Shown here: piece after piece, positions 12,353 through 64,000 of the stretch | Layout: each line of letters begins with the position of its first letter | Numbering within the stretch: the first letter of the stretch is position 1 | NCBI GenBank assembly: GCA_965637545.1 | Contig: OZ281497.1 | Location: 18,290,001 to 18,354,000 of the forward strand | Direction: 5' to 3' | Length of the DNA: 64,000 nt | Source of the DNA: Phallusia mammillata | Taxonomy: Eukaryota | Notes under the pieces: generated by a model | What the model saw: the letters and a program-made list of their open reading frames with translations, nothing else | Database searches by the model: none | What the model was told of the DNA's origin: nothing | Program-made: the position numbers and the translations under genes

Positions 12353-15300
12353 TCAAGTTGTTGCTTCATCAGTGGTGGAACTCTGGGCTTTGTCCTCTGG
12401 CACTGGTTCGTCAGGTTTCTGTGGGGCAGCGGTAAAGGCAAGGTACACGGGCTTGTGATCTCCCATACATACGTTGCTTCCTATCGTGTCGTAAACAGCG
12501 TTGCCGTGATTCTCCTACAAGGCAACGGAAGCAGTTATGCTTATTGAATGAAGGATGACGTCAGATGTTGTTGTTGTTATATGCATTGACGGGAAACTTA
12601 CCTTACACTATGTATGCGACGATGGCCTATAATGTCAACCACAACCTGTAAGTTCTAGCATGCTGGTTTGTTTTTATTTCAATTTTTCGTCGTAAGGTAA
12701 GAGAAACAATACCATACACTGCTAGTTAATTCCAATTGGACTTAAAATGAATAAAGTTCCGTTCAATGGTTTTAATTTTCAAATGATAAATTAAATGATT
12801 AAAGATTACTTCAACTTTCACGTATAACTTGTCAGCATGACAGTTTTTTACTCATAGGGTAACGTAAACGACACAAGCAAAATCAAATCTCCAGTTTGGA
12901 AAAATCATTTAGGCGACACATAATCAAGTCAGGTTTGATCAGGAAACAGGACAAAATACGTAGATACGTGCGTGTATGGCGAATTCTCAACGTCAATCGT
13001 GCAAAGCTAAGACGCACTGACATTTCCGTTCAACTTTTCCAGTTGCTAATGGTCCTAGCTCACTCGACAGCAACGCCTTTATTTACGCCACCGATGTCAG
13101 ATGTCACGACATAGCGACTTTCGGATATGTTACAACACGTAATATACTACATGGCAGGCGAAAACGCCAATTTGTGCTGGAAATAGCAGCTGACGGCAAG
13201 ATAATTTAGCTGGAGACAAGTCGCTTGGGGAATGCAACACGCAATTAGAGATATTGGTTGACTTGTCCGTACGCCTCAATCGGCATGATATTATGATTAG
13301 AATGGGAGACGTTGGATGTTACTTGCACATATGCTGAAAAAGTAAAAGGACCGACCAAAATACATATTATTTTTAACTGTGCATTAATCACACCTACACC
13401 GTCATTAGGGTAGCTCATGTTGTTACGAAAATTTTTAGTCATTAAAAATATTAAAACCTGTCATTTACCTTACGCGATAACAATGGACGGAAATAATAAT
13501 GATATGTTATAAAAATGTTACTGGGGCAAAATGAATGTACTACAAAACTTTAATTTATTCAAATGAAAATCGTACCACACAATTGGTACATTACAGAAAA
13601 ATTAATTCTTTTGAAATGCGGGGTACTGTCTTTTAATAACCTTACACAATGTAAAAAGCCGCCCACTACCTTTTGTGTTCCCCGTGGCTCATGATAACAT
13701 TATCTACCTTTGACGTCATTGCGGCTTACCGGATGTACGATGGATATACAAAAGGTATTGTTCTTTTCGGCATTGTCAGCAGTGTGAATAGACGTGAGGT
13801 CATCAAAATTTAAGTAGCATTACCGACACTACCTGACAGCAACCACATCGTATTTTTCATATTCCTGCGTAAATTGCCTACACATGTGCCAGACCACAGC
13901 GCAATGTAACAATGACTTTGAGCAATTGCAGCGCCCCGGAAGTTGTAAAAATTGTGCAATACTCGCATCAGGTAGCCCACAGCCTGCTAATTGCACATTT
14001 TTTACAAGAAAACGACGCCGAGGCAATCGTCCGCATTGATCAGTGGAATATTGGTGACTTTGTACTCGGAATTACATGTCCGTTGATACGCATGTTTACA
14101 TACGCTGTGGTGATTGCATGACCTTGTCTTCAAAACCGTGCTTACCGCGTTTTGTTTTGTAATTTGAGTTAATCAAGTCCATGTCCATACAAAAGAAAAA
14201 GTTTCACACTTGGTCATGGTAAAAATAGCGATGCTATAGCCTGCTAGGGTCAAAACGCAACTCAACAACATGACTCTATAAATAGCGTTAAGAAGACAAA
14301 TTCTTATGGGAGCAAACAGTCGGCTTACAAATTCATTCAACTGAAACGCTGTAACGGGTGATTTGTGTTCCGCACAACTGAGTTGAACTTTTGCATTAGG
14401 GCAAGGTAAATTTGCAGGTTAACAGTTGACGGGGTCGTAACAACATGTTTTTACCTGTGAGTGGATCCAATCCCACGAATCTTGTGTGAGAAGAATTCGG
14501 TCGCACCAGGACGGGCATCTCGTATCCATGTATCCTTCTCCGTTGCTCGTATCTTCCGAAAACGGATACCTGCCGTTGTATACAAAGTGAATAGGCGTTC
14601 ACGGTCAGTTCACAAAACAAAAGCACGTTTTGTAAGAAAGGTGAGGATATCGTGATGGCAAGTCTTAAAACAAGACATACCCAGCCTAATTTCAAACAAT
14701 ACACCGTTTCCATCTGAATAACGAAGACATGAGAACCGAATATGTCAAAACACCAACATTGAACATAAACGTTGGGAAAATTTCACAGTTTTAAAGACCA
14801 GTGGGGTTACCATTATTGAGGTTACAAGTTGTAATACATCACTTCGAAAACCTATCTATCACGTGCAAACAGTAAGGAATTTTAAATGTCTATTTTACGA
14901 TCCAATGAAGAAACAAACCAGCTGAAGAAGACAAAACAGATGGGAAACGACATGTGCTTTGCCTTTCTTTGTTATGTATCAACCTGTTTAACTTACGTAG
15001 GTGGGAAAGATACGTCAAATTCCATGAGCTTTCCTTCCACATCATTTGGTTCCAGATCGAAACGTCGAAGCTATACACAAGAGATTGTTTTGCATACAAT
15101 AGTTAGGATAAATAGCTACCCTTCTCATGGCATTGTTCAAATTTTACGCCCTTTGTTTGCGATGCAATAGAACTTTGCACGCAGTTTTGTTGCAAGCAAT
15201 AAGCAAACAATCTGCTGAATCGATATCTGTTTAAATTCGAATATACAGTACAGTCCTGTGAGTTGTGACATAACAATACCTAAAATGCGGGTTATTCGCA

Positions 15301-18300
15301 AAATATCATCCCAATGAAAAACAGTCATTAGGACGCGTCTTTAAAGTTACGTCAGTTTTGCTTCAAATTCGGTTTTACTCTGAAAATGCCGAGGCCGGTT
15401 TAGGGGCATCTATGGTATCAGACCGTTTTAAACTAACAATTGTTGTGAAAACGCGAAGTTTTAAAAAAATCGTTGCACTATAGAATAATTCTCTAGGGCA
15501 GCAAGAAAATTCAGTGTGAAAAACCACTAAATCTGTCGCTATATTTTATTTGTTTTATCAAAACAAATGCATTTCGCTATAAAAAGCATCATCAGTGTCT
15601 TATTCAAATAGAATCAGATGTTTGGAATCCCATCACCAAGTAAAACCAGCATCTTGATCTGATTGTAATGACCCTGAATCGTCGCGGTCGTTTTACTTGA
15701 AAGGAGATTTCAATAATAAGAAAAGAATTACTACGTCTCTAGGACAGCGTTTTTCAACCAGGTTTTACGAGAAGAAGTGAGATAAGCTATGCAGGAGTCT
15801 ACTGTGCCGAGGAAACTATATTAATTCTTCACATGTTTTATAAACCGGAGCGATTGTTTTCACACAATCCCTGAATTTAATTCATGTTTAGTTGTGTCTA
15901 GTTTTGATTCTAGTCGTAATTTATTTGCGAGTCACACAGGAGTAAAAACGTTCACAAAAGCTGCTTTCAAAAGTTGGATAGTAAACATAGCAGTTTTTGT
16001 GAACATTATTCCCCCTGCGTAACTGTTAAATATAAAATGGATGTCCTAAGACGTAAGAAACACCTGTGCAAAAAACAAAACATTTTGGGATTTTATTAAC
16101 AGATCTACACGTACGTGAGAATAGCTGGAGTTGGGCCGGAGAAGGGATTGCTCCACCTCAAACACTTTCTTTTCAATCTTCACAAGAACTTCATCGCTGG
16201 TGCTCTCTTCGTTGCCATTGGTGACTGAAGCTTCGTCGTCAGTGCTTTCACTTTCACCGTTTCTATACACGACACGTATTACTTCTTCCTCTTCAGTGGG
16301 CGCGCGCACGACTTGCTGCTTCGACGCTGGACAGAGTTTCTAAATATGACAGGGGATGACGGGGAAGTACGGCACGACTGTACGTGGTGAACATGATGAT
16401 ACAACCCGAGGCCACATTTGCACACATACACGCTGCAATCCCGCATATTATCTTCGGCAGTAATTGGCATATTCACCATTCCTTGTTATCTTGTTAAGAA
16501 AAACTTTTATCGTGAAAGGTTAAAGTCTCTACGTGACTGCGCACTGTCAACGTTGCTTTTTAGGCAACAAAGTCGCAGGTTTTTTTAATTAAAGACCTAC
16601 CAAACCCTGGCTACCAACAACTGTATATGTATCATAGGGTTATGATGCCTGTGTCAGTTTTCCCGTTTTCCCCAAATCCAAACCATTTCGGCTGCAAACA
16701 GTGCTTAAAAGTCACAGCTTGAATGCCTGATCTTTGCATTTTTCGCAGCGTTACAGTGATCGACTCAATATACAAGGTGATTGGCGTATCCTTTTACGTT
16801 GTCGTACGTGAAGTACACAGCTGACAGGCAGTGACAGTCGAAATCGAAAACCGCCCTTGCTCAGCCGTAAATAGCACTCGTGCGAGGAGCGAATGATACA
16901 GAGGAGGTAAAAATAATTGGTAACACGAGTGAATAATGTTCGCTGCCACAATGCACGCTCGGCTAAGCAGAAACCCACGACCTTTTAAACGGTTGCACAC
17001 CGGACACTTGGACGTGCTTTTAACCCAACTCGTAAAAACCTGCTAAGATGTTGCATGTGAACAAGTTACGGATAACGAACCAAGCTTTGCAATTATCTGG
17101 GGGGGTTGGCAAGCACGCCAATTAAAGGGATTTATTGATTGTCCTGGTCGGATTATTGAATGTGCAACAGGCATAGGGGCGAGCGCCTTCCACTTATCGT
17201 TCAGCTACTAATAAAGGCGATTTCCCATCGGGATTTGCAAGCAGACTAGTTAGATCAATCAGAAATGCAACGACAAAAATATATTAGAGAGGCGATTTTT
17301 AATTCCTAATCAAGCAAGCTCCAAGCATGCAACTAATATAGAAAGTCGTTTTAAGTTTTATTAGAGGGTACATCCAGACTAAGTTAGAGGGCATCCGAAA
17401 ATTGTATCGACAGACATGACCGACAGCACTGGCGCACTTGAACATTGTTTATTTATCCACCATACATGCGTCCGCCCAATTACACACAAAATAGCACTGA
17501 CCTGCACCAGCGATTTGACGTCAAGACGAAAATTGAAGTCTCCACAAACAAAACTAACACCATCTCGACAGGGACTTTCCTCTTGCAACCTGCGGAAATG
17601 GTCATTTAAATTATATATTCCTGCTCATTTTTCAAAACAAAGTGTCTAAACTTTTGTCAATAATGTAAAACTATTTGGTGAATGGCAATCTGGGCCATTT
17701 GTGCACCTTGTAATAAATGACACAATGTAATCACTAGGTCGTAGCGAACGGTAAGCCAACAATAAATACAGTATTCGTCAAGGCAACACGGTTGTAGAGA
17801 AAGCGGTCGAACCTATTTAAGACAAACTTGAGCGCCCGTTTTCGGTAAGAGGTGTAGGGGGAGGGACTGCTTTTTATGGAAACCAAATTGTTGTCATCGT
17901 GGAAGAGATGAATGTTGACAAACTCAATTACCCTGTAACGAACATTAAGGGCAATAAATCGACAACCGAGGGTTGCGCTGATGACTTGTAAGTGCACTTA
18001 CTGTCCATTGATTCTCCAACGGACACGACAATATCCTTTCCTGGACCATCTGCACTGAATATAAGTACGTGTAAGGTAATTAAGACTGCAAGGGTGCTAC
18101 ATGAATAAAGTAATGGTACTCACATCTGGAAAGAAGTTTTGTTCAAATTTCTCTTTTTTAACACAGGACAATTTAGGGATATCCTTTGAAAACACTTTTT
18201 TCTCTGAAACATCCTCGAATTCCCCACCTACAGAAATGCAATAAACGGTGTTTTTTGTTAACCAGTTGGTGCAGTACCGACTCTGTTTCAACACAAATAC

Positions 18301-52902: not shown

Positions 52903-55900
52903 TTATTGCAATTTGCACGTGTCGAGTTTTTCTTGTAATAAAGTATACTCTTGTCTTAGCACTCTTAACAGCTTCAATTCGTTCTCAGGGTCTTCGCTGA
53001 TTTCTTTTAATTGGGCGGTGTATTTTTTCTCGAGCACATCGTTAATTCTACGTAGTTCTGCTCGTTTGCCGTACTTCGTCCATTTTTCATATATCGCCTG
53101 TGCAAGAAAAAAAATACACAAAATAATTAATCACAATGCACGAAGTCAATTCTTTCCTATCAAACTTGTCGTGGACAATTTTACTAAAGTTGCAACAATT
53201 GTGACCGAGCTATATGTAGCCTAACCATTGAACAACTAAACTAATTTTTTTCTGCTTTTTGTGTTCAAAATTCCGTGAATCGTGTCAACGTCGATTTATA
53301 TTACTTGTGACGTGGTGATTGTCGTGTCTTTTGTCGTTTGCCATACGTTTTACACGAGGTAGCCGACCGTGTTACAGTGCATTGAATGTTTAATAGTGCT
53401 GTAAGTTTATTCTCAAGAAATAGTTTCATAAAGTTAACTTAATGCGTGTGGTAATGATGCTGCTAGTTGCGTTAATGTTCGTGTTTGTATAGCATAAGTA
53501 AACTCTCTATTTTGTATTATTTTTATGTATGGGCGAAAAACGCTAATTTGGACAATTTAAAGTTGTTTAGCCTATGCTCACTTTATTTGCTTCGATGGCG
53601 TATTGCCCTCTCCATTCCGAAATTTTCGAGTTTACCATTCTTTCCTGGTGCTCCTTAGCATAAAAACAAACAAACAATTTGTTTTAACAGAACATTATCT
53701 GTAAAGCATGAACAGCAGGGCTTAAAGTGGCCACTTTTAGGTTTCGTAACTATAAACAGTAAAACCCTTGGTTTGAAAAGAATTAGTCAGTTGTGCGTAG
53801 AGAAATATATATTTCGCCGGACATCATAAGATCTTTTTTTTGAAAAAGAACGGTAGGCCTACGCTCAACGTGGCGAAACAACATGCATTGAAACAGGTAG
53901 TTGCCACCACCGACACCTGCTAAAAGGAAACAAACCTGTGACAAGGTGACTTAACCAAGCCAGTTAAAATCTAACGAAATGGAGAAAATAAGAAAGTAGA
54001 ACTGGCAAACACATGGCGATATAACAAAGATTAAGGTAAGAATATATTTTCATCTACCGGAATCTAAATAATTTTGTTTAAGCCATGCAAGGGTTTTACT
54101 GTGATATTTTAATTATAAAGTTGCATGCTTTTGTTATTCTTGTGAAAAAAATGACTGTTGTTTTCACGCTAAAATCTTAACTATTACAATTGGTTGGTAT
54201 TTTTAGGAAATTTATTTCCAATTACCTCGTTTTCTTCCATTTCCCGTAAGAAGCGCAGTTTAATATCAAGCATTTGTCTTTTTACCGCGTATTCGTATTG
54301 AAGTTTATTGGATACGCGACAGTTTGCTATTTGTTTCTGAAATGCGTCCATTGACTTCTCCATGATATCTGCTAGTTTCGCCTGTGCTTCCGTTCTACCA
54401 ACTTTCTTTCCCTTCATCTATTTCAAAAATGAGTGCGAAACGATTTTTCAAAATCAAAATGGATGATCATAAGGTCTTTATCTGATCATAAGGTCTTTAT
54501 CTGTACTTTCTGTACTTCTGTACTTATTCAAACAGTAAGGAAAGTTAATATCACTCTTTTCTGTCACTTTGGTTTAACCGCTAAAGAAAATGGGATTAAA
54601 TTGGCCCCAACGTTTATTCCAAATCAATTGTAAAATATATTACCTGTATGATTTCTATCCGCATATAAGCAACGGCCTGAGTAATTGCTGATTCCCCGTA
54701 GACTCTTGAAAAGTCCTAACAACCGAAACACGTTTTTGCCAAAAAGTTTGGAATAAATGAGTAGTGTTTTGTACCTGATATACGGCATGTTCTTCTTTCT
54801 TTTCTGAGACCAACGCCCCGAGTTTTTCCATTAGGTCTGTTGATATTGGATTTAGGATGCTGTGAGGAATTTCTCGTGTGTTCATGTTAAAAGTTTGTGA
54901 AACCCGAGCCATTTCCCTGTCCCCCTTTAAAATCATTTCATTTTCATCCAGGGATACAATGTCGTCCTTAAAAACACTTTAGATTTTTTTGACGGGTTCG
55001 GAAAAATACAGTCAATTTAAAGTTTTCGCAATCACCTCACTCAGTGCATCTTTAAGTTGTTTACAGGCCAAGTGCGCGCAGTCCTTTGCTTTGTTTTCAA
55101 ATTCTTCCTAGAAAAACATCCTTTTGCACAAAAACAATTAATATTAACTCAGCGAAGTTGTACCTTCTTCTTTTCGTTGACAACAAGTGCATGGTTATAC
55201 TTTTCCGTCATTTCAGCTACTAGTTCACTTTTTTGATTTTGTGAAACTTCAGGCAACGTTTTTGGATCCTTTTCGTCGAATTCGGCCATCGCCTCATCTT
55301 TCGCATGCTCATATATTACGGAAAGGGTTTTACCATCAACGTACTCTTGTACTTTCTATGAAATACACACTAATAATATGTGCAGTGCTTGTTAAATAAT
55401 AGGCTATATATAGACCAATGCAATTAAAATGTATACATTTTTTATCCGTGAAAAACTTCACATCATAAGTTTTTCATATTCGCCACCATTTAACCTTAAA
55501 ACATAACATTTGTGTTTCACACATGGAATAAAATCGTATTGTAGGAAATTTTCTTAAGAATGTTGGCAAGTACATTTACTCTCCTATAATTTGGTAAAAT
55601 ATAAAGTCGCTTTGTTAACTGGTTGCTTTAATTGCCGACAGCACGTGATATCATTTCGTACACTTGCCACTGTTTAAGTGTTGCAAAGGTTTACAAAATG
55701 TTGGCCGAAAAACTGTTTTTTATTGCTAGATTTGTGTTTGGGCCTTTTGACGGCGCGGTGTGACTTAGCCCATGTCCAATTAAAACCAGCTGTAAAGAGT
55801 ATAATGTCGAAAACATACGATGGCCAAAAATGAAAGAAGTTGTATGCTCGAATATCTTACCGCATGAATTTGTTCTGAGAAGATCTTCACTAGTTCATTT

Positions 55901-58900
55901 TTATTATCTGTTGCTTAGTTTGGTTCTAAAAATAATGATTTACATTTTATTAAAAATTGTTATTGTTATAGTCATGGCTGGGTTAAATTTTATGTTTATT
56001 TGATGTCATTTTTTAAAGAATAGAAGTATTTTGATTGAATTGACCAATCTACAAAAACACTTTTTACCCGTTTGAATTCATTTTCATCATCTATTATTCT
56101 GTAACTGGCAAATAAAGCTGTTAGAACTTCTGCTTTCAAATCTTTGCAGTTGTACAAGCGCTGGTTAGATGATTCCGATTTAAACATTTCTAAAGCTTGT
56201 TCCTGTACGCGGACGTGCTCTTTTATTAGATCATGATGTTCAACAAACGTTGTGAGGCACACCTAAAGAGGTTGTTACATCCAGTTTGATTTATCAACCT
56301 GCAGTAAAATCTGTTTAGGCTACACTCACCTCTTTGATTGTCTTCTCGTAGTAGGGGAGAGTGGGGTGGGTTGTTACAAAATTTGTTTCGCTGCAATTTT
56401 GGGGTTGAATTATTATTCAGATCATCCTGATTTTTTGTATGGAGTTTGATATGCCCCCAAGTCTAGTAAACATGTTACCAACAAAATAAATTGGTACTTG
56501 TAAAAAAAAATATTTCATGTTTTCTGGTTGATGCTCTGTTGTAACAACTCACCCCATGGTGGGGGTGAGTTGTTACAGTACTTTAGGGAGGTTTCCACAT
56601 CCACAAATGTGACAATTTTTATTTCTTTTATTGTGTGTTTTGTAACATAAATATAATAAAACCACTTTTACTCATCTTAACTATTTATTTTGAGTTATAA
56701 TCAATTTATACAATTTTGTTCATCACGATTCAGAAATTCCAATCCAAATTTGCTAAATTGGTGACATCTTTGTTTCTAAAGTGAACAAAACAGTTGTTTA
56801 GAGTCCAAAAGTAAACTTTTTGGAATGGTAGCAATATCAAGTATTTTGTTTTGCACCAACATTTAAGTTTATTTCATAAAATAGAAGTCACATCACAAGC
56901 TTGCATGTACAGTGTGAGTATTGTAATATCAAGTATCATTGTATGTCACAAATCATGTTGTTTATTAAAATAACAAAACAGATCAAAGGGTTTATAGAAC
57001 AAACACAACACAGTTTACAATCAAATTCATTTTTAAAGTACTTTATGTCAATGAATTCACAAACTTCAACTTTTGACATAACTTTAACCATGGAATGAAT
57101 GACATCCTATATTCCTTACAGTTTCTTGTCCTCGATATAGTAGTAAGTTTTCAAACTTGGTCCAAAACCTGGATTTTACACACATAATTAACTTTTTAGA
57201 AAGTAAAGAGCTTGCAATAACAACATATTGTCACCAAACAACATTTTAAGCACATTATTTATTTACAAAAGTTAAGTATTACCTTTCTCAGGCCCATATG
57301 TTAATCATTGTTCCAGATGTGGGACACCTTGTAACAACTCACCCCACCAGCATGGTGCAACTTAAACCAATCTGAACTTAAAATTAGCTAAAGTTTGCAA
57401 CTTTATTCTTTTACAAGTTACTAACATATCACTTGACAAAAAAACTTGCATGATAGAATTTTTTAAATTGTGTGCTTTAGGAGAGTCGATTTAGCTTAAG
57501 TCCAAAAATTTACTTTAGACACCTCAAAATAGCAAAATTTGAGAAGTCAGCGAATACCCGCACAAATTTAACCAAATTTTGTCGCGCTGGCCGTCCCGGA
57601 TGTACCAATCGACATGCGTAATTCCAGCGGTTTCATGAAAACATTGCCGAAGTTATTCGCGTTGTAACAACCCGCCCCTGTAACAACTTACCCCACTCTC
57701 CCCTAATGTACAGCTGTCTGAACATTTTTTGCAGCGGATTTTTCTGCTAGTTGCTGGAAAACGCCAAAAGTCATGATTTTTTTTTAATTTTTAGACGTTT
57801 TTACAGGGTTAATACAAAATTACGAACAAAATTTGTATTTTTACTTTTTTACAAAGTTTTCTGACAACAGTTTGTCTCTTTCCCCTTGTATCCAATCATT
57901 AAGCTGCGTTTTCATGTCTTCCTTTTGTTTTTGCCCGGCATCGGACACATCTAATGGAAAGAGTGCAAGTTGGGATGCTTGATCATGAAGAGTTTCAAAC
58001 CAATCCTCGTCCACTGGTTTGGTCAATCTCTGTGTTAAGCAAATGTTATAGGTTATAGTAAACCTCAGTTCATTCGAAACTTCGCCTAATTCAGATGAAA
58101 CTTGAGGTACAATTGCTTGGTAGTATTTTCGTTTAATTTAATTCAGATCCGGAGAAAAATTGCTTTTTCAACATGTCCTGACCTAGATTTCTACGTTACA
58201 ATTGCAATTTTGTACGTGTAACCACGTTGAAGTTAGGCTACTATGTGGTGGCCACCGGTAGATTACAAGAGCTTAATTAGGTCTACTGTTTATAACCTTA
58301 GCGTAGACCTCGGTTCACCACCACTGACACCCGTGCCAGGTTGGCATGCAATATGAGTTTTCGTGGCAGGTCAAGCAATTTCAGGTTTTTATTTAAATCC
58401 TACAGTTGGACATAATTAAAACTATTATTAAAGTGCTGTAAAAACATTAAAAAGCGTTTTTGCAAAAAACTATCTAAACAATTTGGAAAAATAAAACTTA
58501 CCTTTATCATGTATTCTCTGTACGTTTGTTGACATGACCCACATAGTTCAGATATTGCTTGCTTCTTACTTTCCTAAAGCAATAAGTTGTTTTAATGCCT
58601 TCACAGTTTCCAACAGAAAATTGCAATAGGCTACTTGTTCTTTTATTATTTCAGGGAGATAGGCCTAATATTGATATTCGTCTTCTATGGACTCTTGCAG
58701 TTTTGTTCTATACATTTGTTGCTCTTCCTGAAGATATTTTTCGCTTTTTACTTTGTTGTTAAACCGATTCATGGCGTTTTTGAGAGTTTCCTCGTGTTTT
58801 TTCTCAAATTCGTCTTGGTGACATTTATGCAGATTGAACTAAAAAAAAATTAAACGTCCGAAAAACATCATCTCACTGTAGTCGTGGGTGTTTTACCTGT

Positions 58901-61228
58901 TTCATTTCAGTGCTGTAGAATTGCAAACATTGCAAATACATTTTTTCGAAATCAAGTTTACGCCTGGTCTAAAAACAAAACAAACATCCTATGCTGTGTT
59001 TTGTTTAATGTTTGCAAAGCATGTTGCTTTTAAGCGTACCTTTACACTTTGATTTTGGTGCTTTAGAAGTTGAAGTTCATTTAGAAAAAAATCATCAGTT
59101 TCCTTCTTAATGTCTAGATGTTTTGGAGTCGAATTATCTTTTTCAAGTTCCATTACGGCGGCTTCACGGCACTCTTTATGCCAACAGTTCAATTGCTCAT
59201 CAGTCATATATTTGTCATCCTTCAACTTTTCCTTCTACATGCAAAAATATGCTTCAATAATGTAGAGCTGCACGAGAAAAGCATCTGTACCATTTTTTCT
59301 TTGTACGTTTTCTGGATTTTTTCCAAAACCTTGTACCTCTGCATTCTTTTCTTTTTCTAAAATATATGTCTTTTTGGTAACATGCAAAACGAAAACCGGG
59401 ATAAGACTCGTACACAAAACAAATAGTGTTTTACAAACTTTTTACCAACTCGGCTTCGTGTTGTGCTGTGTTTTCATCGATGTGTTTGTTTAATGTTCGT
59501 AGAAGATCATCTGAATAAGGTTTAACGAAGTCACATTTGTAGTTTTGGCTTTTTTCGTTAAAATGCATTTTAGCAACTTGTTTAGCTTTTTCCAAACAAG
59601 CACTGAAGTTGTCTTTGTGATTTTCCTGCCAATTAGGAAATGTGTGTAAACAATGACAAGTACAAAGAACAAAAAAGCACTAAAAGTAACCTACATATTT
59701 TAAGCTGTCCTTAAACTTGTCATAGGAATCTTCGACCAGTAAAGTTTTTTTTTAAACTTTACCTTTAATGAATAAATTGCATACAGTATGATAATTTGCT
59801 AGAACGTGCTTTAAAAAATATGTTTCATTTCAAAGGTTGTTGTTGCCAAGGATTTTTACAATACTAGTGTTGGTTTTATTACTTAATTACCGAAATTAAA
59901 AAAGTGCCTGAAACCAATGTAAACGTACTTGTTTGAGGTGGAGTTCATATGAACACGCTATGAAGCGACTTTTCAATTCGTCTTCTAAACTTTCGCCGTA
60001 CTTTTTCTTTAAACGTTCGTTTTCATATTTTTGTTTTTTGTGAAAGGCATCGACTAGCTTCTGTTGAATTTCGTTCTGTTCAGTTTCCAGGGCCACGAAG
60101 TCCAATGTTTCCACACATTTGTTCTAAAAATCAATAGCAGAAACACTTTTAGAGGTCATCTTACGTCGACGATCACAGATTATTAAAAAAAACTATTGTT
60201 TAGTAAAAAGCACCAGTGCTTCTGTACTAGAATCGGTCAACAAAAAATGTTTTCGAAGGAGAAATATATTTCACCCTTATGGATATTATCAGTCTTTGCA
60301 AACAATGACGTAGGCAACGAAAAATTGTGCTAATGTGTAAATATTTTTGTGTAATACCATTTTTTTACTAACGCCATATACCACTTCAATTTAAAAAAAA
60401 TCAAATTTGAAAAAACAGTAATTTTTTTTTCACCTTATGCGGTGTGTTAAATTTGTGACGTGTTTGATTGGCTTTGAGTTCACATCACCTTTTAAAGACT
60501 GGTCTACACTCGTTGTTTTTGCTTTGTAGAGGCTAATGATGTCCGCAAGGGTGAAATATATGCCCCTTTTCCAAAATATTTTTATTTACTAACTATAGGT
60601 TAATCAAACATACTTCAACGACATTTTTTCTTCCAGCATATTTTTCAACCACGTCTTGAACTTCCTTTCGATATTTTTGGTGCACAGCGTTCTTAATTTA
60701 AAAACAAAGTTAGTATCTATACAGGCGTAGCTTACCTTATTTTCGTACTTTAAGGCGGCTCAATATACAAAACGATTAGCTTCTTGGTTAACTGTGGCTT
60801 AAATTTTTATTCAAAGTCAATGACATGTATATCGGATTAATTTGCAATTGTACCGTATAAAATGCACTTACGTTTCTGTCAAACGGTCAAATTAATTAAA
60901 AGTCACAAAAAAGGTTTAAAAACATATCATTTATTTGGTGTAAAATTTAAAGCAAGTATATTTTTTTCAAGCAATATATAATGGGAGAAAAACAACAAAT
61001 TTGGTATTTTAAGTATAGAAGTAGCAAAAATGTTACCACTTTTCTTTTGTTGTTTTGATAGAACATTACAGTTAGTTGCTGTATCCTATTTTTTAGTCGG
61101 TCCCGTAGGTTGTCTTTAAATGTCGCTCCTCCGAGCAGCACTCGAGATTCAAAGTGTTCCATTACAGTCTTTTCAATACCTTTGACAGTCGACGAAACGT
61201 CTTCGTTTTGAAAATACGGTCCAGTGTT
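52903..61228 (-). pseudogene. 3' portion of a long GBP/atlastin-like helical-repeat gene ending in CaaX (CKLQ), probably inactivated
   Basis: Phase-0 exons: 61228-61040, 60691-60614, 60123-59929, 59762-59695*, 59625-59446, 59356-59291, 59234-59040, 58968-58897, 58838-58635*, 58573-58502, 58029-57853, 57753-57704+56351-56330*, 56262-56068, 55925-55861*, 55355-55164, 55107-55036, 54966-54775, 54715-54644, 54417-54226, 53653-53582, 53097-52903 (* = lesion). The exon chain is well supported. The family call rests on by-eye similarity to atlastin/GBP helical bundles; no GTPase domain was seen. Confidence 0.7.
56354..57703. mobile_element. Non-autonomous TA-flanked DNA transposon (Tc1/mariner-pogo-like, 1350 bp) inserted in a coding exon
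   Basis: 25-bp TIRs ggggagagtggggt(gg/aa)gttgttaca (23/25 match). TA duplicated at 56352-53 and 57704-05. Internal gtaacaactcacccca repeats at ~56541 and ~57331. No transposase ORF. Confidence 0.9.
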
Positions 61229-61570
61229 CTAAAAGTTAAAGTTGGGGGTACGAAGCACCAAAGCAGGGGGTACGTCATACAGTGTGAAATTATACGCTAT
61301 TAGGCATATTTGTGAAGAATGCGTACCAGTTACGTTGTTATATGTCTTTGACTGATTTGAATTGACTTATTGTTGGTGTGCTGTAAATATTGTTGAATTT
61401 ACAAGACTGTTTTAATGCACACATTCAACGCATAAGTTATAAATACACTGAGTTTAATTCCTATTAGTACAATTTTATTTACTTCCGTCGGCCATTGTAG
61501 ACAGTGGGTTACGAAAGAAATTTCATGAAAGCTCAAAGGGAACGAGCGCTAAAATGGTTAAGAAACACTG
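61222..61570. mobile_element. Older hAT-type MITE with GGGGTACG subterminal motifs
   Basis: cagtgttct... left end and ...ggttaagaaacactg right end. The flanks do not form a TSD. Confidence 0.55.
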
Positions 61571-62224
61571 CAGTACAAGATTAAAAAAAACATCGTATTG
61601 GCAAAAAGTCGGAAGTGTGTCGGCACACTCAATCTAGTCTGACACATAAACTTAAGTTTCGTAAACCAGGGATTTTGGACACAAACCAAGACTGGGTCAG
61701 GAGGTTATTTGTCGAATATCTTTGCATTCAAAAGCACGATCCCTAACTTAACGTCGACACAGTGTCCATGCGACTTTGTGTCTGTTCAACGCTTGACCCC
61801 TATTTCCGTTTCTTTCCCGTTTTTACTGCAACATGTTTAATTGCCAGTTCCCCGTGGTATATGTGACGTCACACTACAACTCTTGCATTTTACTTCTTTC
61901 TAAACTTAAAAAGGTTTCGCTGAAATATTCCAGTTTCAAAGTTTCGTCCTAATTTTAATTCTGTGGGGTTTAACAGTGTATAAAGCATGGTTTCAAACCC
62001 GACAATAATTTACTGACTTTTTGCATGCAAAAATATAATAATTGAAGCAATTTTCGTTGGTACTAAGCAGGAAAGACAATTTACCGCTTTAACTGTGGGT
62101 TCGTAATATATACACATATATATATATGCACCACCGAATAACGCCCAAAAAGCCTAGATTATTTTTCTTACTTGATGCACAAATTGAGCTGCTCACTGAT
62201 AAGATCAGTCTTAACTGTCTATAA

Positions 62225-63501
62225 CAGGGGTGGCCAGACCTGCTTCATGCTCGAGCCGCATATCACAAAACTTAGTTTTAAAAGAGCCCCAACACAAAAA
62301 ATCAAAAACGCGTTTATTCACTCACAATCAAGTGTAGGCTTTTAAATAATGATTTATTGTTGTGTGGTGATACTGTGAGTCTCCACCTGGGCTGCAAGGA
62401 TTTTGAAATTAGGCTTTTTTGTGTTTAGCTTTGTAATGACGTTTCTATTGGGCGTCGTTGTGGAATAATTTTTTCGACAACGGCGTCTTAAGGCCGTTTT
62501 GAAAACAAACAAAAAACTTGCAAGATAGCTAACTTGCAGGAACTTAGCGTTGCAAGTTAGCTAACCTGCCGCAAGTTAGGTTATCTTGCAACGCTAAGTT
62601 GCCGCAAGTTAGCTAAGTTGCTGCAAGATAGCTATCTTGCGACGCTAAGTTACCGCAACTTAACTAACTTGCAACGCTAAATTGCCGCAAGATAGCTATT
62701 TTGCGCCGCTAAGTTGCCGCAAGTTAGCTAACTTGCGACTCAAATAGTTAAGTTGCATCAAGATAGCTAACCTGCAACGAAATATAGCTAAGTTGCGGCA
62801 ACTTAGCGTCGCAAGTTAGCTAAGTTGCGTTGCAAGTTAATTAAGTTGCCGCAAGATAACCTAACTTGCGGCAAGTTAGCTAACTTGCAACGCTAAATTG
62901 CTGCAAGTTAGCTATATTTCGTTGCAGTTAGCTATATTGCGGCAACTTAGCTATCTTGTAGCAACTTAATTTATTCGACGACGGCGCCCCATACGTTTCA
63001 AGTTACTGGTTTTGTAACGATTGAGCGAATCTTGACAGATAAGACACACAGGTTTACCTTCATTATCAATGAATGGAAACTCCTCCTCCCATTCTGTTTT
63101 AAAAGTTATATTTTCCTGTTTATCTTTCTTTTTTTGTAATTATTACTCAGCAACATTTTTTGGGATAAACTTTGCAGTTATTGCTAGTATTAGCAGCAAT
63201 AAAAATGTAAAATGTTTTTAATGTCAGCCCTGACTTACAGCTTCAATCTGACAATATATTTGACTACAATGCACAAGCTAGCACGCTTCTGTACAATAAT
63301 GTTCTTTTCGGTTTTCGGAATGTACATTAGGCTACTTATTACAAACAGTCAGTCTATTGTTAATACGTGATAGAATGCATTATTTTATAACCAGGTTAAA
63401 CAACTCGCAACATGGGGAAATACATGTGCAACATTAAAGAGCCGTAAACAAAGACTCAAAGAGCCGCATGCGGCTCGGGAGCCGCAGTTTGGCCACCCCT
63501 G
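62225..63501. mobile_element. hAT-type non-autonomous element (1277 bp) containing a nested insertion
   Basis: TIRs CAGGGGTGGCCA at both ends, GAGCCGC subterminal repeats, imperfect TSD gtcTAtaa / atcTAtat (6/8). Confidence 0.8.
62448..62991. mobile_element. Nested TA-flanked element with internal palindromic ~10-bp minisatellite (foldback-like)
   Basis: Imperfect 24-bp TIRs (19/24) flanked by TA. Array of gcaagttagctaacttgc-type palindromes at ~62520-62968. Confidence 0.75.
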
Positions 63502-63699
63502 ATCTATATTGTAGCGCTTGTGGTACCCATTTTCCCCACACAATAGGCGTACTAAAAGTCAGACGCATGTGACTACTAGGTTGGTAATACTCTTTTTAGT
63601 ACCACAAAATCGGTAGATAGTAGTTTGAAAATCAAATATTTAGCAAAAGGGTTTCATTTATGTCCCAGTACATATATTTTAATCAACATGTTCACGGTC

Positions 63700-63759: not shown

Positions 63760-64000
63760 GTCTAAGATTGTCGTTTAGTCCTTTTCCAACAAAAGATCAG
63801 TTACTTATTGGAAGGCTTGCAACGACGGCCCAGGCAACTCGAAAACCCACAGAACTCAGATAATAATGAACCAAATTAGCCGATTCGGTGCATCGTTTGC
63901 AAGGTTTCGGTACAACATTGTTGAAACGCCTGCACTGAGATGTTTTCTCATGTAGGTCTATTATACACAAGCTCTTTGGTAGTTTTAAGTTAGATTAAAT

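Follow-up and report, generated by a model that had tools for sequence, protein, structure and literature searches.

Atlastin (ATL1-3 and Drosophila Atl) is a dynamin-like GTPase of endoplasmic reticulum fusion. Here we describe a gene in a 64,000-nt stretch of Phallusia mammillata DNA (GenBank assembly GCA_965637545.1, contig OZ281497.1; G000:C4:18,290,001-18,354,000; hereafter the window); the gene runs on the minus strand, and its 3' two-thirds make up the interval 61228-52903. We think it quite probable that this gene is a pseudogene of an ascidian-expanded family of hairpin-less, lipid-anchored, long-stalk GTPases derived from atlastin. The encoded architecture would comprise a G domain, eleven tandem three-helix bundles (3HBs), and a terminal CKLQ.

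The gene and atlastin are alike in the G-domain motifs (P-loop GAFRKGKS, DTQG, and RDW), in that the solved relatives found were all atlastins, and in having a 3HB directly after the G domain; unlike atlastin, the gene has neither the pair of transmembrane (TM) segments nor the C-terminal amphipathic helix, and it has eleven tandem bundles rather than one and a CaaX-type end. Vertebrate GBP1/2/5 share with it the Pfam GBP superfamily, solubility, a helical stalk, and a C-terminal CaaX, as well as a clustered gene family with birth-and-death turnover. The GBP1 stalk begins with two 3HBs (PMC4576867), and the GBP C-terminal CaaX serves membrane and pathogen targeting (PMC9005921). In contrast to vertebrate GBPs, the stalk described here is about 4 times longer and strictly modular, and the G domain is more similar to that of atlastin. 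A stalk of serial 3HBs is also found in Sey1p/RHD3; that of Sey1p has four, the last helix of each running on into the following bundle's first helix (PMC4576867). Sey1p/RHD3 differs, however, in its G-domain family, in its TM anchors, and in having four bundles instead of eleven, and Pfam scans of the G exons of the present gene returned GBP only, with no RHD3-type domain.

TM-less atlastin-like proteins of other invertebrates combine an atlastin-type G domain with the absence of a membrane hairpin but have one to three bundles rather than eleven or twelve. Among them, BmAtlastin-n of the silkworm Bombyx has been reported to be antiviral (PMC9005921). The barnacle protein XP_043245738.1 (Amphibalanus amphitrite, annotated as 'atlastin-1-like', 641 aa) has three module matches about 95 residues apart and no TM segment, and it ends in CTIL; a single-sequence AlphaFold model of its tail has a low predicted local distance difference test score (pLDDT 48) and was used only for its all-helical pattern. 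A 650-aa protein from ENA/JGI likewise carries three modules and ends in a hydrophobic tail anchor instead. Serial 3HBs are already known from Sey1p and GBP1; an array of 11 to 12 bundles with a CaaX end is a combination that our searches of the protein library and the literature did not find. Nor did literature searches find a tunicate or ascidian expansion of atlastins or GBPs.

Exon chain and lesions of the window copy

The exon chain was rebuilt in two ways, by enumeration of AG/GT-bounded, stop-free, phase-0 segments and by reading the junctions by hand, and all searches were made exon by exon. A first-pass annotation of the sequence had described a strict alternation of 11 long (177 to 204 nt) and 10 short (65 to 78 nt) exons in one continuous phase-0 frame ending in CKLQ and a stop. 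The alternation and the size ranges were recovered, with about 937 codons in the 21 exons and TGC AAA TTG CAA TAA (52903-52917) as the last codons of the frame. The continuous frame was not, being interrupted by lesions. For comparison we used mainly a compact paralogue at C7:300.6-309.4 kb, in which 21 of 21 tail exons are intact. The long (L) and short (S) exons and the one insertion are as follows.

61040-61228, minus strand: L1, 189 nt, helices 2-3 of the first 3HB; AG/GT, phase 0; AlphaFold pLDDT 85, two helices
60614-60691, minus strand: S1, 78 nt, one helix, proposed to be helix 1 in bundle 2; from exon enumeration and alignment
59929-60123, minus strand: L2, 195 nt; from enumeration, with L2 of the paralogue as best match
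59695-59762, minus strand: S2, 68 nt, frameshifted, lacking 1 base next to an A9 run at about 59745-59753; in the paralogue S2 measures 75 nt and is intact
59446-59625, minus strand: L3, 180 nt; from enumeration and paralogue match, z 9.8 against shuffles
59291-59356, minus strand: S3, 66 nt; from enumeration, with the Y-x-x-x-M motif of atlastin helix 1
59040-59234, minus strand: L4, 195 nt; from enumeration and paralogue comparison
58897-58968, minus strand: S4, 72 nt; from enumeration
58635-58838, minus strand: L5, 204 nt, interrupted in frame by TAG at 58665-58667; L5 of the paralogue has an open frame at the corresponding place
58502-58573, minus strand: S5, 72 nt; from enumeration, score 47 with the paralogue's S5
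57853-58029, minus strand: L6, 177 nt; from enumeration and paralogue comparison
57706-57753, minus strand: 5' part of S6, 48 nt of a transposon-split 72-nt exon; read from the sequence, frame continuous across the TA duplication
56352-57705, no strand assigned: 1350-bp non-autonomous DNA transposon bounded by 27-nt terminal inverted repeats, plus TA target-site duplications; from an inverted-repeat search
56330-56353, minus strand: 3' part of S6, 24 nt including the TA, donor GTGAGT; read from the sequence
56068-56262, minus strand: L7, 195 nt; from enumeration, score 93 with the paralogue's L7
55861-55925, minus strand: S7, 65 nt, frameshifted; the paralogue's S7 is 72 nt
55164-55355, minus strand: L8, 192 nt; from enumeration and paralogue comparison
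55036-55107, minus strand: S8, 72 nt; from enumeration
54775-54966, minus strand: L9, 192 nt; from enumeration and paralogue comparison
54644-54715, minus strand: S9, 72 nt; from enumeration and paralogue comparison
54226-54417, minus strand: L10, 192 nt; from enumeration and paralogue comparison
53582-53653, minus strand: S10, 72 nt; from enumeration, resembling S11 of the C7:268-283 kb paralogue
52903-53097, minus strand: L11, terminal exon, 192 nt (64 codons) followed by TAA; the CKLQ codons are at 52906-52917

Five lesions were found: frameshifts in S2 and S7, the TAG in L5, the transposon within S6, and a lost donor in S0, a short exon that precedes L1 outside the window. No in-frame acceptor rescues the 68-nt size of S2, and S6 measures 72 nt only after the transposon is excised. 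S0 has one A fewer than its counterpart in the paralogue, and its phase-0 GT donor, at about C4:18,356,752, is thereby lost. Because of these five lesions, the copy in this assembly cannot code for the giant protein. It is a probable pseudogene, a call that depends on the assembly being correct at all five sites. At most positions the match of its modules to the family profile is also poorer than in the intact paralogue, consistent with decay.

The transposon in S6 has terminal inverted repeats that begin GGGGAGAGTGGGG, a motif that is also present internally. At least 25 copies of it occur genome-wide, and four of them are 99% identical with ends exactly at the inverted repeats, which indicates that the family was recently active.

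The foremost alternative is that the gene is functional, the frameshifts being homopolymer assembly errors, the TAG and the transposon being private to a haplotype, or the damaged exons being skipped, so that a long or variably shortened prenylated GTPase is made. Several observations favor it and count against a pseudogene. All three 1-nt deficits are located in A runs, where assembly errors are possible; the transposon, 99% identical to other copies, is very recent and possibly specific to one haplotype; all tail exons are nominally phase 0, so that damaged ones could be skipped without loss of frame; and no damage is seen in the G-domain exons or in 16 of the 21 tail exons, all of which have good splice sites. 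Nevertheless, we regard a functional gene as unlikely. Five independent lesions of three kinds fall within about 2.9 kb of coding sequence, whereas the C7:300-309 kb paralogue, in the same assembly, has none in its 21 tail exons. If one short or long exon were skipped, a three-helix unit would be disrupted, and the poorer profile fit of the window modules also speaks for the loss of function that a probable pseudogene implies.

Identity of the repeated module

The first-pass annotation had noted a resemblance of L1 to the atlastin 3HB, and the comparisons extend this to later long exons. When a profile of the 11 long exons of the window gene was searched against the PDB (177,635 sequences), the top two matches were residues 355-407 of Drosophila atlastin (E = 9e-5) and 360-411 of atlastin-3 (E = 4e-4); with L1 left out, atlastin was still at the top, at E = 0.06. 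Combining the window gene and the paralogue in a profile of 22 long exons brought atlastin-3 to 2.5e-5, and a 20-module profile without either L1 placed atlastin-3 357-408 first (E = 3e-4), the next, unrelated match having an E value of 0.2. Across these searches, the long-exon profiles also aligned to residues 357-409 of ATL3 and 355-413 of Drosophila Atl. Against 1.84 billion protein representatives, the 22-module profile gave 19 matches, mainly canonical atlastin bundles or multi-bundle atlastin-like proteins.

AlphaFold modeling of L1, with the 22 modules as the alignment, gave a helical hairpin (helices 8-29 and 35-62). The top 10 matches of this model in a Foldseek search of the PDB were all chains of atlastin-1 or -3, with template modeling scores of 0.79 to 0.89 and root mean square deviations of 1.2 to 1.7 Å; the E values are weak, the model being short. 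The L1 sequence alone found no atlastin in the PDB, only chance matches to TIM, and a profile of the short exons found nothing meaningful there. Taken together, the profile and model comparisons show homology between the long exons and helices 2-3 of the 3HB in atlastin.

Could the tail instead be a generic coiled-coil or spectrin-like rod, its periodic exons having arisen by duplication of an unrelated helical unit? Module-to-module identity is only 8 to 18%. In leave-one-out tests within the window gene alone, the modules mostly failed to reach significance, with only L3 and L5 clearly beating shuffles, and Pfam searches of the 22 long exons (E <= 0.1) returned no consistent family. These same searches gave no GBP_C and no spectrin, the fold that the first-pass annotation had named as a competitor. 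With the paralogue added to the leave-one-out test, at least one of the two copies reached z >= 3.5 against the profile of the other positions at 10 of 11 positions; position 4 reached only 2.8 (4 of 300 shuffles). A generic rod is very unlikely, since the only significant matches of the module profiles in the PDB are atlastin 3HBs at homologous residues, even without L1, the library-wide matches are atlastins, and the structural matches of L1 are atlastins only.

We infer that the repeat unit, one bundle, is a short exon (about 24 codons, helix 1) followed by the next long exon (about 64 codons, a helical hairpin), because S0 occupies the place of atlastin helix 1 and L1 corresponds to helices 2-3. 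The unit thus begins at S0, outside the window, and the long-plus-short register proposed at first was one exon off. Sequence gives weak, collective support for the assignment of the short exons: they share an aromatic-x-x-x-Met/Leu motif, and as a group they exceed shuffles against a profile of atlastin helix 1 (sum z 3.3, individually mostly non-significant; in that test the paralogue's S0 sequence was mis-cut and is to be ignored).

The upstream GTPase domain

A GTPase of the GBP/atlastin superfamily had been expected upstream of the helical exons, and it was found on the same strand past position 64000. Searched exon by exon with Pfam GBP (PF02263), the genome yielded three same-strand matches 4.5 to 6.8 kb past the window end, and examination of C4:18,351,001-18,371,000 for upstream exons identified six well-spliced G-domain exons on the minus strand at C4:18,357,971-18,360,912 (window-equivalent 67,971-70,912), 7 to 10 kb upstream. 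The P-loop, DTQG, and RDW motifs were read directly. PF02263 matches four of the six exons, with E values of 1e-16 to 2e-3. When one of the exons was compared with the PDB, all 13 of the 13 sequences at E < 0.01 were atlastins, the best being atlastin-1 (1e-17), and the solved relatives of a second exon were likewise all atlastins (E = 5e-5). The last G-domain exon aligns to residues 263-327 of atlastin-3, the junction into the 3HB. The predicted G domain is therefore of the atlastin type and closer to atlastin than to GBP, with atlastin-1 and -3 as the nearest solved structures. Of the original GBP/atlastin label, the atlastin side is borne out by profiles and PDB matches; the GBP side is not, the G domain not being GBP-like and GBP_C (PF02841) having no match either on the 22 long exons or in an exon-wise search genome-wide, a type of search that is insensitive.

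S0 (window-equivalent 66,826-66,752) follows the last G-domain exon, and the 21 window exons follow S0. That the GTPase exons and the helical exons are two separate genes is extremely improbable. In favor of two genes, 1.1 kb lies between the last G-domain exon and S0, and the interval between S0 and L1 is 5.5 kb long and filled with repeats. In the compact C7 paralogue, however, the equivalent exons are consecutive on one strand with introns of about 60 to 100 nt, and L1 represents helices 2-3 of a bundle whose helix 1 (S0), like that of atlastin, comes immediately after the G domain.

In the 5.5-kb S0-L1 intron, short repeats (GCAAGTTAGCTAACTTGC-like and partly palindromic) form an array at 62500-62970 that is flanked by dispersed repeats at 61243-61572 and 62994-63510, and dozens of copies of the intron repeats of the 61243-63510 region, 80 to 91% identical, occur across the genome. 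Just upstream of the GTPase gene, two tandem gene copies lie on the minus strand at window-equivalent ~72,980-79,700; they encode a GDSL/phospholipase-B-like core (FIGGNDLCALDRDY...) together with a stretch rich in Thr and, at the C terminus, a hydrophobic segment.

Paralogues, predicted membrane attachment, and family biology

Arrays of same-sized exons on one strand are present at C7:300.6-309.4 kb, C7:172-185 kb, C7:268-283 kb, C7:204-236 kb, and C3:23.23-23.25 Mb, and at least five paralogues have an 11- to 12-module array with position-by-position correspondence. L1 is 38 to 41% identical to L1 of the paralogues. Window exons L1 to L10 match the same-numbered exon of the C7:300.6-309.4 kb paralogue best or near-best: same-number scores for long exons are 59 to 130, compared with 17 to 50 off the diagonal, with positions 8 and 10 tying with or falling just under one other exon. 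This diagonal argues that the array is older than the gene duplications. The array is thus ancient and shared, and not, as first supposed, a private expansion of this gene.

Intact paralogues and variation in module number had been proposed as things to look for, and both are present in this genome. Besides the intact C7:300.6-309.4 kb copy, the C7:268 kb gene has 12 long exons; in other subfamilies, the C2:15.27 Mb gene (G000:C2:15260001-15280000) has at least four bundle modules, and the C6:23.67 Mb genes (G000:C6:23668001-23688000) have one module each, with altered P-loops (GPFRIGKS and GPLRTGKS). Genes with 1, at least 4, and 11 to 12 modules constitute a natural series of stalk lengths in one genome. 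A rough count from Pfam matches to the most conserved G-domain exon gives about 55 to 60 GBP/atlastin-type loci in 240 Mb. A motif scan downstream of the C7 and C3 paralogues revealed no kinase or other end domain. The idea that a two-exon unit duplicates holds, in the short-plus-long register: in the C7:172 kb gene, one S10/L11-type pair is present three times in tandem (G000:C7:171001-191000, ~13415-17196, plus strand). The last two of these copies look closely similar by eye, hence an apparently recent two-exon duplication.

A CaaX-like end had also been proposed, and it recurs in paralogous terminal exons. Three homologues of the terminal exon were detectable (33 to 40% identity), and they end in CVVQ (at C7:204,234), CQKI, and NCYKTL. 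Two of the three retain a Cys at -4, in support of a genuine prenylation box; the third has its Cys at -5, which counts against a universal one. No TM segment was detected in any tail exon (maximum Kyte-Doolittle 19-residue mean, 0.75). In the predicted design of the gene, a lipid-anchor signal takes the place of atlastin's membrane hairpin.

By analogy with atlastin and GBPs, intact members would be anchored by a farnesylated C terminus at one end of the rod, which with eleven bundles would be about 50 nm long if extended, and the distal G domains would dimerize on GTP. Such proteins might tether or coat membranes, possibly in defense. Three grounds make a defense role plausible: the expansion, clustering, and decay of the family; the part that GBPs play in defense; and a TM-less silkworm atlastin that is reported to be antiviral (PMC9005921). 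It is conceivable, as a minority prospect, that the intact paralogues are an undescribed class of dynamin-superfamily effectors that reached a GBP-like design independently (soluble, prenylated, multigene, and fast-evolving), with a rod of 11 to 12 bundles whose module number sets the reach from the membrane, and that they coat or tether in tunicate innate defense.

With 11 to 12 bundles, each on its own pair of 72- and ~192-nt exons, the family represents the lengthening of a mechanochemical stalk by exon-pair duplication. It is relevant to a question in the GBP literature, namely whether GBP-like defense roles in invertebrates passed to atlastin relatives. The locus itself is of value chiefly as a dated case of gene death in a family that turns over rapidly.

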